Below the pieces are notes generated by a model, which saw only the letters and a list, made by a program, of their open reading frames with translations, did not search any database and had not been told where the DNA came from. From the sequence record NC_061448.1: a stretch of DNA of 64,000 nt. One strand, 5' to 3'. This document shows, piece by piece, positions 21,383 through 26,659 of this stretch; the stretch's first letter is position 1, and every line of letters begins with the position of its first letter. The position numbers were made by a program, and so were the translations under genes.

Positions 21383-22842
21383 TGGTTCATTTTCCTTTCG
21401 CTATACAGAATGTTGATGCGAAGGTTACGCAGTGCAACGTATTCGAGTACCGTGTTCGGGATGATATCCTGCACAGGGCTTTCGATGTTGCAGTAGTCTA
21501 CTTCTGGTCTGCGTACAGGCTGATCAGGGTCAATCCAGTCGTACAACACACGGTCTGTAATGTCAGACAGCGCAAGACGTTTGCCCAGCAGTCCCGGACG
21601 ACGCTCAAACAGTTTAAGCACGGACTGTTCGAGGGTAGCCTTGTTCGAGTCACGATCACCAGGCGCGTCAGCATACAGAGACACGTTCAGCGTACAGTCA
21701 ATCTGTAGCTTGTCTGGGTTCCACGATTGAACATCGAGCGGGCTATTGAACTGAGCAAGCCAGTTAAGGAACTTAGTCCATTGCGCAGAAGAAGGGTTAG
21801 GGTTGATGCCTCCCCACGTGCTTGTGTTACGAGGCAACACAGCAACACGCACAACGCCCTGCCACTCTTTATCGTTCGGTGCAATCTCTGCCTGACCCTG
21901 AACAACAACGTCAGCAACGTCAGGATAGAGCGCGATAGCAGCTTTCCATTCGTCACGGCGAATCAGTTTCTTACGACTGCGGCCGACGATAGGACTGTAG
22001 TTGCGGTAGTAGTCAACAGGCGTTTCATCAGAACCGCCAAGCGCAGCGCTCACTGTCTTGCCTTGAAGCTGAGGGTTAGACAGGCACTGCACTTTCAGAC
22101 CGATACTGTCCGTGTTACCGCTTGCGCCTAAAGACTTAATGCCCTGCACACGCAGCGTATAACCTGCTGGTGGCTGTGCTCCCCACTGTTCGCCACCGAA
22201 CTGAATCTCAACGTCACCATCATCAGTTGTCACGTCGAGGAAGATTTGCTGATCAGCATACGCCTCAAACAGACACTTGGTGAAACGCTGGAACTCAATC
22301 TTCGTGCCGGTAGGATGCTCGAACCACACACGCAGATCATCAGTCAGTTGGAAGTTCTGTGTGCCGAGCTTAATCGACATGTAATCGACAGTGTTCGGTA
22401 CAATCTGACTGAACGTAAACACTTCACCAATGATGAAGTCCACGTTCTTCACTTCACCTGGTTCCCACTGAGTTACTTCTGCAAGCAACGCATTGAAGTT
22501 ACCGATAGTGAAAGGCGTGTGCTTATCGTATGACTGTTTCACCGACGTCAGATTAGCAACGGATGCAGTCACGGTTGATACTGACTTACGTCCGATATCG
22601 ACGCCCAAGTAACGAGCGTTAGCGAGCACTGAGGTGTTGCGTCGTGCGAGGCGACTGAATGCCTCACGCGCTGCAATCAAAGACGCATAGGCGTTCGTCA
22701 CACCGAGGTCACCGAGTGCATCAGCAAGCAATGCAGTCAAGGAGCTGACCTGTGCGTCTGTCCAGTAGCTGGACTTGTTAATACGATTCAGGAAGTCTTG
22801 TGCAAACTCCTCATGAGTCGTGTATGTGTTTAGCATGGACAT
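21379..22842 (-). CDS. Baseplate wedge protein, T4 gp6 / baseplate J-like (487 aa)
   Basis: AREAF..LARR.TSV...ARYLG and GGSDETPVDYYR motifs; directly downstream of the gp25-like gene. Confidence 0.85.
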   Translation of the reverse strand: MSMLNTYTTHEEFAQDFLNRINKSSYWTDAQVSSLTALLADALGDLGVTNAYASLIAAREAFSRLARRNTSVLANARYLGVDIGRKSVSTVTASVANLTSVKQSYDKHTPFTIGNFNALLAEVTQWEPGEVKNVDFIIGEVFTFSQIVPNTVDYMSIKLGTQNFQLTDDLRVWFEHPTGTKIEFQRFTKCLFEAYADQQIFLDVTTDDGDVEIQFGGEQWGAQPPAGYTLRVQGIKSLGASGNTDSIGLKVQCLSNPQLQGKTVSAALGGSDETPVDYYRNYSPIVGRSRKKLIRRDEWKAAIALYPDVADVVVQGQAEIAPNDKEWQGVVRVAVLPRNTSTWGGINPNPSSAQWTKFLNWLAQFNSPLDVQSWNPDKLQIDCTLNVSLYADAPGDRDSNKATLEQSVLKLFERRPGLLGKRLALSDITDRVLYDWIDPDQPVRRPEVDYCNIESPVQDIIPNTVLEYVALRNLRINILYSERKMNQ

Positions 22843-22843
22843 G

Positions 22844-23266
22844 TTATTGGCCCTTCATTGCAAACGTAATAGATTGTTTGTCTTCGAGCTTAGGACAGCG
22901 CCATGTGACTACGCACACGTAGGTCTGTTCGAATTGATCGCTCGCTGTACACGCTGTTTGCACGTTCGTTACGTCTTGCGTCAGACCGTTGTTAACGTCT
23001 TCAAGGGCGAGGCGCATGTACGTTGCAATCCAGTCAGCGGTAGTCTGGTCAAACGGTTCAAATAGATATTGATATACGTCTGCACCGAAGTTCTCGCGCC
23101 ACTTACGTGACTTCTTGCGAGTACCGATTACCATCAGAATCTTCTGGACGATGCTGTCCATGTTCTGCACGTTATCACGCGGTTCGAGTTGAATCCACGC
23201 GTTAATATCACAATAGATGCGCTCACTAATGGGCACGTCTATCAGTCGAATCCCGATTCCTGCCAT
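22844..23266 (-). CDS. Baseplate wedge / sheath initiator, gp25-like (140 aa)
   Basis: SIVQKILMVIGT....RKWRENFGADVYQYLFEPFD is a typical GPW/gp25 pattern. Confidence 0.85.
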   Translation of the reverse strand: MAGIGIRLIDVPISERIYCDINAWIQLEPRDNVQNMDSIVQKILMVIGTRKKSRKWRENFGADVYQYLFEPFDQTTADWIATYMRLALEDVNNGLTQDVTNVQTACTASDQFEQTYVCVVTWRCPKLEDKQSITFAMKGQ

Positions 23267-23556
23267 TAGCCAAATCTCACGTTAGAACTTCCGTTCGATG
23301 CAGTATCACCGCAACTGTTTGCATCACCTGCGCGTTGAGCAGGCTTGCCATTGACACGCACACTTGAGCTTGAAGTAGCAACACCTGTATGAGGCGGCTT
23401 CTTGGGTTTCCAGTGTGGTCGATACTTGTCGCCAGCGCGAACACTTCCTTTGCCATTCACGAGCACATTAGACGAGGCTTGTGCCGGAACAACAGGGAAG
23501 TAACCACTGTGACCAGTAGACAGGTCAGTGCCTAAACGAATAGCTTTCTGTCCCAT
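23266..23556 (-). CDS. PAAR-repeat spike tip protein (gp5.4-like, 96 aa; start revised to MGQK)
   Basis: AIRLGTD.STGH, NVLVNGKGSVRAGD, VRVNGKPAQRAGD..SCGD; AGAGGAG RBS. Confidence 0.9.
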   Translation of the reverse strand: MGQKAIRLGTDLSTGHSGYFPVVPAQASSNVLVNGKGSVRAGDKYRPHWKPKKPPHTGVATSSSSVRVNGKPAQRAGDANSCGDTASNGSSNVRFG

Positions 23557-23578
23557 GTTATTCTCCTCTGTTAGGCAC

Positions 23579-23586
23579 AAATTAGC
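23579..23586 (-). promoter_or_regulatory. Candidate late promoter motif GCTAATTT
   Basis: Between a terminator and the PAAR start (23 nt upstream). Confidence 0.65.
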
Positions 23587-23598
23587 TTGTTACGCAGT

Positions 23599-23636
23599 AG
23601 AAACGGAAACGGGCGACCCGAAGGCCACCCGTTTCC
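23599..23636 (-). terminator. Intrinsic terminator with C(UUCG)G loop
   Basis: Minus strand GGAAACGGG-UGGC-CUUCGG-GUCG-CCCGUUUCC then GUUUCU. Confidence 0.7.
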
Positions 23637-23663
23637 TATGCTTGGATTTTGTCGCTTACTCCC

Positions 23664-23822
23664 TCACACCCGAAGCGAGTGCCCGTCAGCCTTCGCTGTT
23701 GAGCCGGAGTGAATGACCGAGAGTGAAGCCGCATTCCACGGCAACTGAAAGTGACTCTCGGACCATGATAGCAAGTGACCAAGCATCACGATTGCTATCA
23801 GCGACACATAGAACAAAAGCAT
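23664..23822 (-). CDS. Unannotated 52-aa small membrane peptide MLLFYVSLIAIVMLGHLLSWSESHFQLPWNAASLSVIHSGSTAKADGHSLRV
   Basis: AAGGAG 5 nt before the ATG, hydrophobic N-terminal segment of about 19 aa, terminator follows; below the 60-aa ORF-track cutoff. Confidence 0.55.
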   Translation of the reverse strand: MLLFYVSLIAIVMLGHLLSWSESHFQLPWNAASLSVIHSGSTAKADGHSLRV

Positions 23823-24895
23823 GTTTGCTCCTTGTGTCTCTACTGTAAGTAAAACATTTGCAAATGTCGATCAAGTTACTTCAAGTTGCCCTTCGCCCGA
23901 CTTCACTAGGGTTTCAACTCTCTTTCTCTCTTTACCGCCTGGGTTGCGGTCGAACCGCACACAAGAGCAACGCTGCAACGATACGTGGGCGGGAAAACAC
24001 GTATCGCATTCACATCACTCCAGCGAAGGAGGTGGCCCATCGGTGATCTGCGGTGGTTGATACACTCTTTAACAATCGCTCTTGTTGTGCATTAGATCGT
24101 GGTAGGAACGCGATTGACCGCTAACAAGTCCTATACGATATTTCACTACCCGGAAAAGTGGGTTTTGCTATGGCAGCACGTCAACGGCAGCATGGCGCGG
24201 ACACACTCCATTGAACATTGTTAAGGGCAATGCTCAACAGGCTGTGAACAGCTTTGACCAAATGCAGAGTCGCTCGTCGCCCAACATCACTTGAGTATCT
24301 CGTCTGCATTCTTTTACTCCCTGAATACCGTGAAAAGGCACGGCACCCATGAGGGTCTGCGGATGTTTATCACATTAAGACTCTTGCAGTTCAATCCTGT
24401 ACGCAGTGTGTTGAGTCGTCCGCTGGATGACACACTACATACCCTCACCGTGTTGTACATCGGTAGGAAAGAGCTGGTGGAAAGTTGTCATGAAGACTGC
24501 GCGCCTGGAGGCTTGCCACTCTTCCCAATGCACACTAGTGCCAGCTAATGTACATCAGGCAGCGTAGGCTGCGATATTGCTATCCCTGAAAGATTGGTCA
24601 CAGCGTTGAGACTTCGCTCCACCAATCTACGTGCCTAGAGGCAATTGCCGTGCGTATGTCTGAAAAGAATGTAAAACACTGGGCCTTGTGAGCGTCAGCA
24701 GCAGAGCAACGGTCTATCACGTGGGTGCCGGGGTTGTCCTCACGATTACAGAGCATAAGCTCAAACCGGCTGGAGGCTCACATGCCGCCAAGAAATACAG
24801 CGCGTGAGTTTGATGGACCAGCAAGATGCCACCCGCGAAGAAAGCATCTTACCGCAACAGTTAGATATTACTATCTGCAATTTTTATTTACAGAT
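23823..24895. ncRNA. Candidate large structured non-coding RNA or very long structured leader (about 1.07 kb)
   Basis: No credible ORF of 60 aa or more in an otherwise wall-to-wall coding window; more than a dozen hairpins plus nested long-range helices; strand evidence is mixed. Confidence 0.5.
24181..24309 (-). CDS. Possible 42-aa small ORF MQTRYSSDVGRRATLHLVKAVHSLLSIALNNVQWSVSAPCCR
   Basis: GGGAG 7 nt before the ATG; the ATG lies in an 8-bp helix; may be fortuitous within the structured RNA. Confidence 0.25.
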   Translation of the reverse strand: MQTRYSSDVGRRATLHLVKAVHSLLSIALNNVQWSVSAPCCR

Positions 24896-26659
24896 TTAAA
24901 ACGCTTTACGTTCAACATTTGAATATAAAGTTTCATACGGCTCAGAGTACAGTTCAGGACCGCGTTGAGCGCGTACAGTCACGTAACCAGTGTGACGGTT
25001 GAACGCAGTGATTTCGACTGTAGGCTGTTTAGGCTTGAGGGTCGCATAAATCGGAGCGTTAAGCGTTGGTTCGTCTGTCTGAATCTTATTTACAGATTGC
25101 AGCGCAGCACCAGACAGCGTTGGCAGCTTGAATCGCAGTTCAGCACGTTTCTGACCGAACGCAGCGCGAATCATACCGTTCTCTAACTGCACACCGTTCT
25201 GCTTGAGATACGCAGCGATGCGACGGCCGATACCAGTAAGCTGATCGCGAGTACGAGGGTCGAACGTACCTTCGAAGCTGATTGCTTCTGCTGGTTGACG
25301 CACAGACAGATGCAGGCCGGTATTGAAGTAGCCTTCGGTCAATAGACGCAGCACTTCTTTAACGACCTCTTTCGTGTTCTGACCGATAGCAGCAACGCGC
25401 AGTTCAGGCACGTCTACTTTCACAGGGTCACGCAGTTCAGTCTGGTTGTCCATGTAGCCGAGAGACACATGCTTCGCGTTGGTGTACGTATGCTGCAACA
25501 CACCAGTAGCGCGAATCAATACAGAGCCGCTCTTAGCGAGGTCATACAGTTCATCGCTGGTGGTTGTGCTGAACAGGTAGTAGTCTGTAGGCACTGCCAT
25601 GCGATTGACAGCTTCGACCGCTTTCGTCTGAACTTCTTTCACAGTCTTACCGAAGACAACACGACTACGGTTAGGCTGAGAAGCAGATACAGGGAAGAAC
25701 GCACCGTAGACAGCCTGCACGTTTTTCTTAATAGGCTGCTCAGAAGGAACCTTCTTGCCGCCCGCCAGTGGAGGCAGCTTAACGCCCACCAGCTTGCCTT
25801 TAACGATGTGCTTGTTCTCTTTGACAGGCTTGAGCGAGTCAACGAGTTTAGCCAGCGACGCACCATCAAGAATCTTCTCAAGCGGAACAACGAGGTTCTG
25901 CGGCAGATAGTGTTTCTTGCGATACGTATAGATGACGGTATCTTTCTTGATCTGCAAAGGCGTTGCCATATTGCGACCAACTACACCGACAGGCTGGAAC
26001 GTGTTTGCTTTGTCATCAGCGATTGAACCAAACTGTTTAGTGAACTCAGTCTGACCAATGATGTTAGCAACACGCAGATGACCACGAACGATAAACACAA
26101 TCTTCGGTTCATCTTTCAGGCGCAGCTCGTAACGGTCACGGTTCAGATAAACCATGCTGTACTTGTCGCCCTTCTCCAGCTCAAGGTCATACTCGTCGTT
26201 AGCATCATCGACAACGACTTTCTTACCCTGATATGTAACGTAAGTGCGAGCACCAGCAGACTCGGACGCAATCTCCATAGCCTTGCCAGTGTTAGACAGT
26301 GACGCTGCGAAGTCACGCACGGCTGGCATCAGATCGAATGAAGACGACACAGCATACGGTTCGCGCTTATCGCCCAGATGCAGATGCACAGCACTGGTGC
26401 TGGACATGAAGACGGTAGTACCTACATCTTCGTGCTTGCCAGCAAAGTTCATGCCGCTGATACGTTCGATGATGTTGGCATTCAGTGATTCGAAGCGAAC
26501 ATCGCTACCAGCAGCGAAGTCAAAGATTTCACCGTGACGCCAAGCATAGGCCACGTTGTTCGAACTAAGTCCGACAAACGCATCACCAATCTGACTGACG
26601 GTTAACGGCATGATACTCAAATCACGAATGATCGAGGACTGCTTTTTAATGAGGTTCAT
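24896..26659 (-). CDS. Hypothetical protein (587 aa), probable head-internal protein
   Basis: Long ORF; internal IASESA motif followed by a domain shared with three other proteins in the window. Confidence 0.7.
   Translation of the reverse strand: MNLIKKQSSIIRDLSIMPLTVSQIGDAFVGLSSNNVAYAWRHGEIFDFAAGSDVRFESLNANIIERISGMNFAGKHEDVGTTVFMSSTSAVHLHLGDKREPYAVSSSFDLMPAVRDFAASLSNTGKAMEIASESAGARTYVTYQGKKVVVDDANDEYDLELEKGDKYSMVYLNRDRYELRLKDEPKIVFIVRGHLRVANIIGQTEFTKQFGSIADDKANTFQPVGVVGRNMATPLQIKKDTVIYTYRKKHYLPQNLVVPLEKILDGASLAKLVDSLKPVKENKHIVKGKLVGVKLPPLAGGKKVPSEQPIKKNVQAVYGAFFPVSASQPNRSRVVFGKTVKEVQTKAVEAVNRMAVPTDYYLFSTTTSDELYDLAKSGSVLIRATGVLQHTYTNAKHVSLGYMDNQTELRDPVKVDVPELRVAAIGQNTKEVVKEVLRLLTEGYFNTGLHLSVRQPAEAISFEGTFDPRTRDQLTGIGRRIAAYLKQNGVQLENGMIRAAFGQKRAELRFKLPTLSGAALQSVNKIQTDEPTLNAPIYATLKPKQPTVEITAFNRHTGYVTVRAQRGPELYSEPYETLYSNVERKAF

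Follow-up and report, generated by a model that had tools for sequence, protein, structure and literature searches.

A putative membrane-peptide gene with a probably occluded ribosome-binding site, joined to a large structured RNA in Erwinia jumbo phages

INTRODUCTION

Does a short open reading frame (ORF) lying beside the baseplate genes of an Erwinia jumbo phage encode a peptide, what governs its ribosome-binding site (RBS), and what is the long stretch of DNA without annotated genes that surrounds it? The window analyzed here is a 64,000-nucleotide (nt) stretch of record NC_061448.1, the 267-kb genome of the jumbo phage pEa_SNUABM_1 (genus Alexandravirus). On its minus strand, an ORF of 52 amino acids (aa) lies inside a 1.3-kb stretch without annotated genes, between a gene for a 587-aa hypothetical protein and the gene for a PAAR spike tip. 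A preliminary description of the window had proposed that the Shine-Dalgarno (SD) sequence of this ORF is buried by a distal upstream "anti-SD" strand, which can instead pair with an "anti-anti-SD" strand still farther upstream. We suggest, with moderate confidence, that the ORF and an RNA domain overlapping most of it form the 3' module of a highly structured Erwinia jumbo-phage transcript of ~1.27 kb.

An equivalent gap of about 1.27 to 1.46 kb is present in 16 further phages, with nucleotide identities to the window of 60 to 92%. Together with the window, these phages from Alexandravirus, Sasquatchvirus (Y3), and Snuvirus (SNUABM_7/_34) make up the set of 17 to which the counts below refer, and the gap (24896-23590) was aligned in all 17 sequences over 1291 columns. 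Conservation, covariation, the coding signature, the predicted occlusion of the start site, and the statistics of the promoter motif were computed. Pattern scans of IMG/VR and of metagenomes for additional relatives returned only near-identical copies of known phages, and literature searches turned up no paper mentioning the large RNA or the peptide.

THE PEPTIDE GENE

The AAGGAG sequence, its 5-nt spacer, the ATG at 23822, and the 52 codons that follow (23822-23664) are all present as the preliminary description had given them. Conservation of the ORF in relatives, which it had named as a check, was also borne out: the frame is open in all 17 phages, with a length of 47 to 53 aa (47 to 64 aa across all homologues). 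Homologues were found outside the set as well, namely, Yoloswag gp109, SNUABM_5 gp115, and the products of two metagenomic jumbo phages, L034 and L036, where the surrounding DNA no longer aligns. The ORF is conserved in at least five phage genera. The ORF is indeed unannotated in the present record, although its homologues carry annotations as hypothetical proteins in SNUABM_17, _35, _2, _5, and Yoloswag. A profile search of 5.8 billion proteins yielded 20 clusters; every one came from the same phage group, and their names were only hypothetical or uncharacterized.

Of the first 19 residues of the peptide, 14 to 18 are hydrophobic, and in most lineages R, K, or H follows the transmembrane (TM) helix. 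The product, described earlier as a small membrane peptide, is very probably a single-pass one, and the part encoding its N-terminal TM helix carries a coding signature. The extra nucleotide states at the first, second, and third codon positions number 23/9/23 in the first 21 codons, and the same sparing of the second position is seen in the N-terminal 19 codons over 11 lineages (26/13/26). The remaining codons show no such periodicity (41/39/36). Synonymous series for Leu, Ile, Gly, and Ser run across the 11 lineages, Arg16 is encoded by five codons (CGC, CGA, CGG, AGA, and AGG), and in the Yoloswag/SNUABM_5 lineage one-third to one-half of the differing codons are synonymous. The indels within the ORF measure 3, 3, 15, and 1 nt, the last of them near the 3' end, compared with 23 of 133 gap events (17%) divisible by three in the upstream region. 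The ATG and the AGGAG with its fixed 5-nt spacer are kept in 14 of the 17 phages; in SNUABM_34/_7 the original ATG is lost, and an 11-nt insertion supplies a new in-frame ATG. Judged from these substitution patterns, protein-level constraint is confined to the TM helix and the basic residue that follows it in most lineages.

Several features of the ORF weigh against its status as a gene and would fit a different reading, in which it is never translated and is an open frame tolerated within a structured RNA, the whole 1.3 kb being one noncoding RNA. Taken over its full length, the ORF has a low synonymous fraction (0.14 to 0.30), covarying helices cover two-thirds of it, and another frame, of 62 codons, is likewise open in the window. 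Different phages use two different frames for the C terminus (…HSLRV in the window; SNUABM_34, P0002, Yoloswag, and SNUABM_5 have …AHVRGMWE), while the nucleotides are conserved. Neither Pfam, PHROG, nor two Atlas look-ups returned relatives of the peptide beyond generic small membrane proteins at chance scores, and SNUABM_3 and SNUABM_34/_7 are without a canonical SD sequence. Against an untranslated ORF stand the conservation of second codon positions in both comparisons, the five codons of Arg16 and the synonymous series in genera without alignable DNA, the in-frame length of three of the four indels, the relocation of the ATG in frame, the fixed spacing of the AGGAG, and the promoter motif that the gene has for itself in Yoloswag and L034 (see below). 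We therefore regard the untranslated reading as unlikely and, on this comparative evidence, think it quite likely that the peptide is made. Its candidate roles are lysis timing, exclusion, or a toxin.

THE RIBOSOME-BINDING SITE

The SD sequence of the window is predicted to lie in a local hairpin with a free energy of −17.3 kcal/mol (Table 1), whose lower stem is formed by GACACA (23838-33) and UGUGUC (23808-03) and whose 6-nt loop (23823-18) contains the AUG. GGAG of the SD sequence pairs with codons 4 and 5 of the ORF itself, within a partner region that spans codons 3 to 6. The predicted probability that the SD sequence is unpaired is 0.01 to 0.25 in 14 of the 17 phages, these being the ones with a canonical SD sequence. 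In the present genome it is 0.106, compared with a median of 0.43 in 220 long SD-bearing genes, only 0.9% of which have a lower value. The homologous genes of Yoloswag, SNUABM_5, L034, and L036 have values of 0.01 to 0.03 with the AUG in the loop, despite their different sequences. As far as folding models can tell, the SD sequence is probably buried in this local hairpin and expression of the peptide is probably restricted. The earlier proposal of restricted expression through a buried SD sequence is thereby retained in part, the SD sequence lying in a helix; its partner, however, is not the upstream strand 23970-59 but codons 3 to 6, downstream of the start site.

THE UPSTREAM RNA

The gap upstream of the ORF does not behave as coding DNA. 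In a six-frame test, the synonymous fraction was mostly 0.3 or less and never above 0.39 in a segment of 20 codons, with frequent stops, whereas the flanking genes had fractions of 0.53 to 0.83 without stops; a pseudogene or frameshifted gene was ruled out by this test. When the whole gap was folded with RNAalifold, 354 pairs were predicted, 151 of them compensatory, compared with 37 to 48 in six column shuffles that preserve conservation, and the fold energy was −586 compared with −334 to −355 in the shuffles. The structure belongs to the minus strand, on which 803 cells of the alignment hold a G.U and only 83 an A.C pair, and the antisense fold reached only −478. A cause at the DNA level for the conservation of the gap, such as an origin or a pac site, was ruled out by the compensatory pair changes and the excess of G.U over A.C. 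Long stretches of the body of the RNA are both invariant and unpaired; one of them is the loop CAUCCAGCGGACGACUCA, whose closing stem swaps AGUGUGU/ACACACU for AACACGU/ACGUGUU.

No Rfam family matched at E values up to 1 over 22500-26000, which includes the covariance models of described families of the GOLLD, ROOL, and OLE kind, and a tRNA scan of the region returned nothing. The RNA, ~1 kb in length, would be a new family, previously undescribed, of the large ornate kind. In the metatranscriptome X17, the depth given by the assembler was 61 to 176 over 23874-24945, falling to 13.6 in the single bin 24142-24275, and 0 to 3.6 in both flanking genes. In X14 the depth was uniform, hence DNA-like, and two other runs were uninformative.

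The 11-nt motif ATCTGTAAATA immediately follows the stop codon of the 587-aa gene. It has 33 sites in the 267-kb genome at no more than one mismatch, compared with 1 for the reversed control; the strand of these sites follows gene orientation, and they often stand 20 to 30 nt before a start codon. The 35 nt around the copy at 24885-24895 are nearly invariant in the 17 phages. From its distribution, ATCTGTAAATA appears to be a compact phage promoter, and the start of the long RNA is presumed to be near 24872. In style, the motif with its preceding A, A-ATCTGTAAATA, resembles a T4 late promoter. A second copy in the window (25087-25097, minus strand) is inside the 3' end of the 587-aa gene. A weak sigma-70-like site at 23870-23842 has not survived in Y3 or in the Alexandra clade, and a conserved sigma-70 promoter for the ORF was thus ruled out. 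Consensus scans of the opposite strand found no phage promoter motif near the ORF, although such scans cannot exclude an antisense RNA, and the only sigma-70-like match that they gave on that strand (24114-24142) is more than 290 nt from the ORF.

The last covarying hairpin of the upstream RNA (23883-23920) has up to nine sequences changed on both sides of a pair. The linker that follows it is variable and unpaired, with a 5-nt deletion in the Alexandra clade. Before the SD sequence, this linker contains a perfect 14-nt palindrome, ACATTTGCAAATGT (23861-23848, minus strand). The close clade conserves this palindrome, and the Alexandra clade has lost part of it. At the equivalent site, Yoloswag and L034 have different small palindromic hairpins, each after a promoter motif of its own.

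The arrangement is different in the phages resembling Yoloswag and SNUABM_5. A gap of ~700 nt follows the 587-aa gene there, with a fold energy of −302 compared with −215 to −238 in shuffles (from only four sequences), and several small protein genes (five in L034) stand between this gap and the peptide gene, which in Yoloswag and L034 has a copy of the promoter motif to itself, together with a small hairpin, on its upstream side. A search of the Yoloswag, SNUABM_5, and JA loci with an nhmmer profile of the gap recovered only the promoter, the 3' domain of the ORF, the terminator, and a few weak blocks that were out of order. This comparison indicates that the ORF module is separable from the large RNA in other genera.

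THE 3' DOMAIN AND THE TERMINATOR

Codons 13 to 52 of the ORF and its stop codon overlap a structured RNA domain, in which an invariant closing helix, GCUUGG (23784-79) with CCAAGC (23645-40), surrounds five covarying helices. The six helices comprise 36 pairs; pairing holds in 97.2% of cells compared with 86.6 ± 0.9% in shuffles, and 19 pairs are changed on both sides compared with 8.4 ± 1.7; each value was reached by 0 of 500 shuffles, and controls in which the partner strand was slid were only 35 to 47% paired. Hairpins with tetraloops, one of which contains the stop codon, switch between CAGC/GCUG, UAGC/GCUA, and CGGC/GCCG. The last two-thirds of the ORF evolve as RNA structure, probably forming a stabilizing or functional 3' domain. 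In the part encoding the TM helix, two folds are mutually exclusive, a local 13-bp hairpin (23798-23766) and the long-range GCUUGG/CCAAGC helix (23779-23784/23640-23645). If the module holds a structural switch, this pair is a better candidate than the three-strand one proposed earlier.

The intrinsic terminator that follows is conserved in all 17 phages, is present in L034, and is the only part matched by BLAST in the Dickeya JA phages. From the terminator to the start codon of the PAAR gene there are only 48 nt (23557-23604, minus strand). No recognizable promoter was found in these 48 nt, other promoter classes not having been surveyed, and the minus strand has no ATCTGTAAATA-type motif downstream of the promoter of the RNA. 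A repeated promoter motif within the 48 nt was also rejected, the enriched k-mers being matches to coding sequences. These circumstances, together with a stop codon only 28 nt before the terminator, would suit a leader peptide whose translation decides whether the terminator (23636-23597) forms and thereby gates read-through into the PAAR/baseplate operon. However, complementarity for an antiterminator is not above chance for the 52-aa ORF (49 and 15 of 200 shuffles), the terminator stem would be out of reach of a ribosome standing at the stop codon, and a promoter of one of the unsurveyed classes could serve the PAAR gene; we consider a leader peptide improbable.

THE PROPOSED THREE-STRAND SWITCH

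Both helices of the proposed switch can be drawn in the window. The SD strand (23837-25) is complementary to 23970-59 over 12 bp with one bulged G (helix 1; −14.5 kcal/mol), and 24090-76 is complementary to 23970-57 over 14 bp with one bulge and one G.U pair (helix 2; −19.5 kcal/mol, or −21.3 kcal/mol when extended). Neither helix passes the comparison with relatives, and the anti-SD/anti-anti-SD architecture built on them fails accordingly. Helix 1 is at chance level: when the kilobase upstream was shuffled with dinucleotides preserved, 20 of 200 shuffles offered the SD strand a duplex at least as good. Helix 2 was equaled in 4 of 200 shuffles and is somewhat better than chance. Over the 17 phages, helix 1 is paired in 68.4% of cells, the same as the average of controls in which the letters of the 3' side were permuted between sequences. 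All 12 of its pairs are present only in the window and SNUABM_32, and 4 to 7 of them in nine phages. For helix 2 the paired share is 75.7% of cells: the close clade keeps 13 or 14 of the 14 pairs, SNUABM_3 has 11, and eight phages, in which the helix breaks, have only 3 to 8. No consistent compensatory change was found in either helix, and both are weakened in the 11 phages where position 23959 has changed from U to C.

The "anti-SD" strand has another partner. In the RNAalifold structure of the 17 sequences, 23973-23960 pairs with 24025-24012 as a long hairpin within a branched domain. In the three helices that hold this strand, 96.5% of cells are paired and 8 of 12 pairs are changed on both sides; none of 500 shuffles reached this level of pairing and one of 500 reached the count of compensated pairs, while sliding the partner by 1 to 3 columns lowered the pairing to 18 to 75%. 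For the whole domain (23934-24044; 34 pairs), 97.5% of cells are paired and 20 pairs are compensatory, neither value being reached by any of 500 shuffles. By this covariation, the upstream RNA has a conserved hairpin whose 3' arm is the "anti-SD" strand. A covariance model of the domain (24047-23931) gave no significant match in distant loci, the known Y3 homologue itself scoring only 11 bits. Alternative hairpin haplotypes at 24007-23978 and 23679-23663 are distributed contrary to overall similarity, and SNUABM_17, which is 92% identical to the window, has the haplotype of the Alexandra clade; this distribution suggests recombination among cocirculating phages.

Other parts of the earlier proposal fared similarly. 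The 7-codon ORF does overlap the 24090-76 strand, but it is not conserved: three phages have ACG instead of its ATG, three lack the ATG through a deletion, and two have a shifted frame. Attenuation through a leader peptide requires a conserved short upstream ORF that has a start site and overlaps alternative helices, and the 7-codon ORF is not one. Gating by a ligand was not upheld either, as no aptamer was recognizable and the Rfam search described above gave no family. In the phages resembling Yoloswag and SNUABM_5, the upstream strands of the switch are absent, because the ORF there has its own promoter motif, a short leader, and five intervening protein genes.

That the switch is real but confined to the clade of the window, with 23970-59 alternating between the SD strand and 24090-76, is very improbable: the three strands do resemble each other, helix 2 exceeds 98% of shuffles in strength, and both helices are intact in the eight closest phages (9 to 12 of 12 and 13 or 14 of 14 pairs), but this intactness reflects sequence identity without compensatory change, and the chance level of helix 1, the change at 23959, the covarying alternative partner of the "anti-SD" strand, and the local RBS hairpin, which is more stable (−17.3 compared with −14.5 kcal/mol) and forms first during transcription, all stand against it. 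In the explanation that we prefer, the distal strands 23970-59 and 24090-76 play no part in the occlusion of the RBS, and the proposed switch can be set aside.

NEIGHBORING FEATURES

The coordinates of the features are collected in Table 1. The upstream 587-aa protein, annotated as hypothetical, contains a KMPT-N domain (PF20294, E value of 1.9e-18) and has 42 to 100% identity across 57 jumbo-phage records from Erwinia, Dickeya, and Yersinia. SNUABM_22/_16 have a 76-nt insertion directly after the stop codon of this gene, at the start of the gap, and an annotated 470-nt ORF on the opposite strand over the 5' part of the RNA, which is not conserved in the other phages. Between the terminator and the PAAR gene, SNUABM_33, 2910A, SNUABM_3, Yoloswag, SNUABM_5, and two metagenomic phages have an extra ORF of 40 to 42 aa that ends in …PAKGPKIP… (L007-L010, about 1680-1810; L022:6386-6514; L023:6689-6814; L034:3824-3952; L036:3924-4049). 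AD1 has an insertion of ~120 nt at this position, and the window is without this ORF.

Table 1. Features of the gap between the 587-aa gene and the PAAR gene, in window coordinates
Feature	Position	Strand	Remarks
587-aa hypothetical gene	24896-26659	minus	Upstream neighbor of the gap
Phage promoter-like motif ATCTGTAAATA	24885-24895	minus	11 nt; adjoins the stop codon of the 587-aa gene
Body of the large structured noncoding RNA	23880-24872	minus	Contains the proposed upstream strands in its 3' third
"Anti-anti-SD" strand of the preliminary description	24076-24090	minus	No conserved partner established; pairing with 23970-57 kept in the close clade only
Branched hairpin domain	23934-24044	minus	Closed by 24044-36/23943-34
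Inner hairpin and small hairpin	within 23934-24044	minus	24007-23998/23987-23978; 23958-23946
Last covarying hairpin of the upstream RNA	23883-23920	minus	Helices 23920-15/23888-83 and 23911-08/23892-89
RBS hairpin	23800-23841	minus	GGAGCAAA (23831-24) pairs with UUUGUUCU (23817-10)
52-codon ORF and stop codon	23664-23822	minus	Predicted single-pass membrane peptide, with a TM helix over residues ~2-19
Structured RNA domain	23640-23784	minus	Overlaps codons 13-52 and the stop codon
Intrinsic terminator	23597-23636	minus	14-bp G+C-rich hairpin, UUCG loop, U-rich tail
PAAR spike-tip gene	23266-23556		First gene of a tightly packed baseplate/tail operon; downstream neighbor of the gap

DISCUSSION

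The features described above can be joined in the following scheme. The phage RNA polymerase holoenzyme would start at ATCTGTAAATA just after the 587-aa gene, and the long RNA of ~1 kb, the covarying domains of which are established by comparison, would fold into them cotranscriptionally. From the folding and the comparison with 220 genes, the local hairpin would be expected to close the start site of the peptide within about 20 nt of its synthesis, so that few ribosomes would initiate and translation of the peptide would be held low. The 3' domain and the terminator would end the transcript and probably stabilize it. We hold this explanation as a whole, that is, a structured transcript carrying a peptide gene with a locally occluded RBS and ending in a terminator, to be rather probable.

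Some observations count against it. We infer the ends of the transcript, the translation of the ORF, and the limiting effect of the hairpin on translation. In X17, the depth over the ORF was zero; contig data of this kind prove presence, not absence, and the ORF may sit on a separate, rarer transcript. A weak sigma-70-like site precedes the ORF. Classical covariation in the RBS hairpin is sparse, because its 3' arm is coding, and in Yoloswag the register of the hairpin is shifted. Pairing of a purine-rich SD sequence with U-rich hydrophobic codons could also be, in part, a by-product of composition.

By analogy with known systems, the ~1.27-kb transcript might further be imagined as one bifunctional molecule, in which cotranslational insertion of the peptide, or binding of its basic tail, would bring the RNA to the inner membrane, as with OLE RNA and OapA; alternatively, the giant RNA might be the regulated leader of the PAAR/baseplate operon, acting through the terminator. 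We regard this extension as a long shot. What is unusual about the structured transcript and its peptide gene is that a covarying RNA domain extends over most of an ORF and that this ORF is fused to an ornate RNA of ~1 kb without a known family. Three layers of information are present in 430 bases, namely, a gene for a membrane peptide, an RBS-occluding hairpin to which the gene contributes codons of its own, and an RNA domain whose constraint prevails over that on the protein in the C-terminal two-thirds of the ORF. Several genome records thus lack annotation of a conserved gene as well as of a large RNA gene. As the phages are easily grown and the host is tractable in the laboratory, the function of the large RNA and that of a membrane peptide found in five genera are directly accessible to genetics.

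The type I toxin mRNAs, such as hok/sok, tisB/istR-1, and zorO/orzO, encode hydrophobic peptides of about 50 codons on structured mRNAs in which the SD sequence is sequestered. The ORF described here resembles them in encoding a single-pass hydrophobic peptide of ~50 codons (<60 aa) and in being part of a highly structured RNA with a sequestered SD sequence, the primary transcript being poorly translated, features that are here predicted. It differs in that consensus scans found no gene or promoter for an antisense RNA, in that the partner of the SD sequence is codons 3 to 6 of the ORF itself, and in that the carrier is a strictly lytic jumbo phage with the ORF beside baseplate genes, where the role of a toxin is only a candidate. 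It is also fused to an ornate RNA of ~1 kb, far beyond any known type I leader.

In the hairpin-occluded genes of other phages, the product is needed late or in small amounts. The early transcripts of T4 gene e and the lysis and replicase genes of MS2 share with the present ORF, where it is predicted, a local stem that buries the RBS. In T4 e, a promoter located within the hairpin lifts the occlusion, and in MS2 translation of the upstream cistron does so; for the present hairpin no relieving event was found. Dual-function RNAs, such as Staphylococcus aureus RNAIII with delta-hemolysin and SgrS/SgrT, are long stable RNAs that carry a short ORF for a small peptide, as here, and the peptide encoded by RNAIII is membrane active. 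The present transcript is about twice as long as RNAIII, no target-pairing function is known for it, and in related genera protein genes separate the ORF from the large RNA.

The large RNA itself is best compared with GOLLD, ROOL, and OLE, which are large ornate RNAs of bacteria or associated with phages (PMC12286853, PMC5737381). It differs from them in having no Rfam match and in being carried by an enterobacterial jumbo phage. It resembles them in its length of ~1 kb without coding capacity, in its dozens of covarying helices, and in its invariant unpaired stretches (PMC12286853, PMC5737381), as well as in being phage-borne and abundant in a metatranscriptome. Large ornate RNAs are recognized by a length of >500 nt, no coding potential, and many helices supported by covariation, and the RNA described here has all three, with covariation support matching that of the known ornate RNAs. 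As in ole-oapA, the gene that follows this large RNA is very probably one for a membrane protein.

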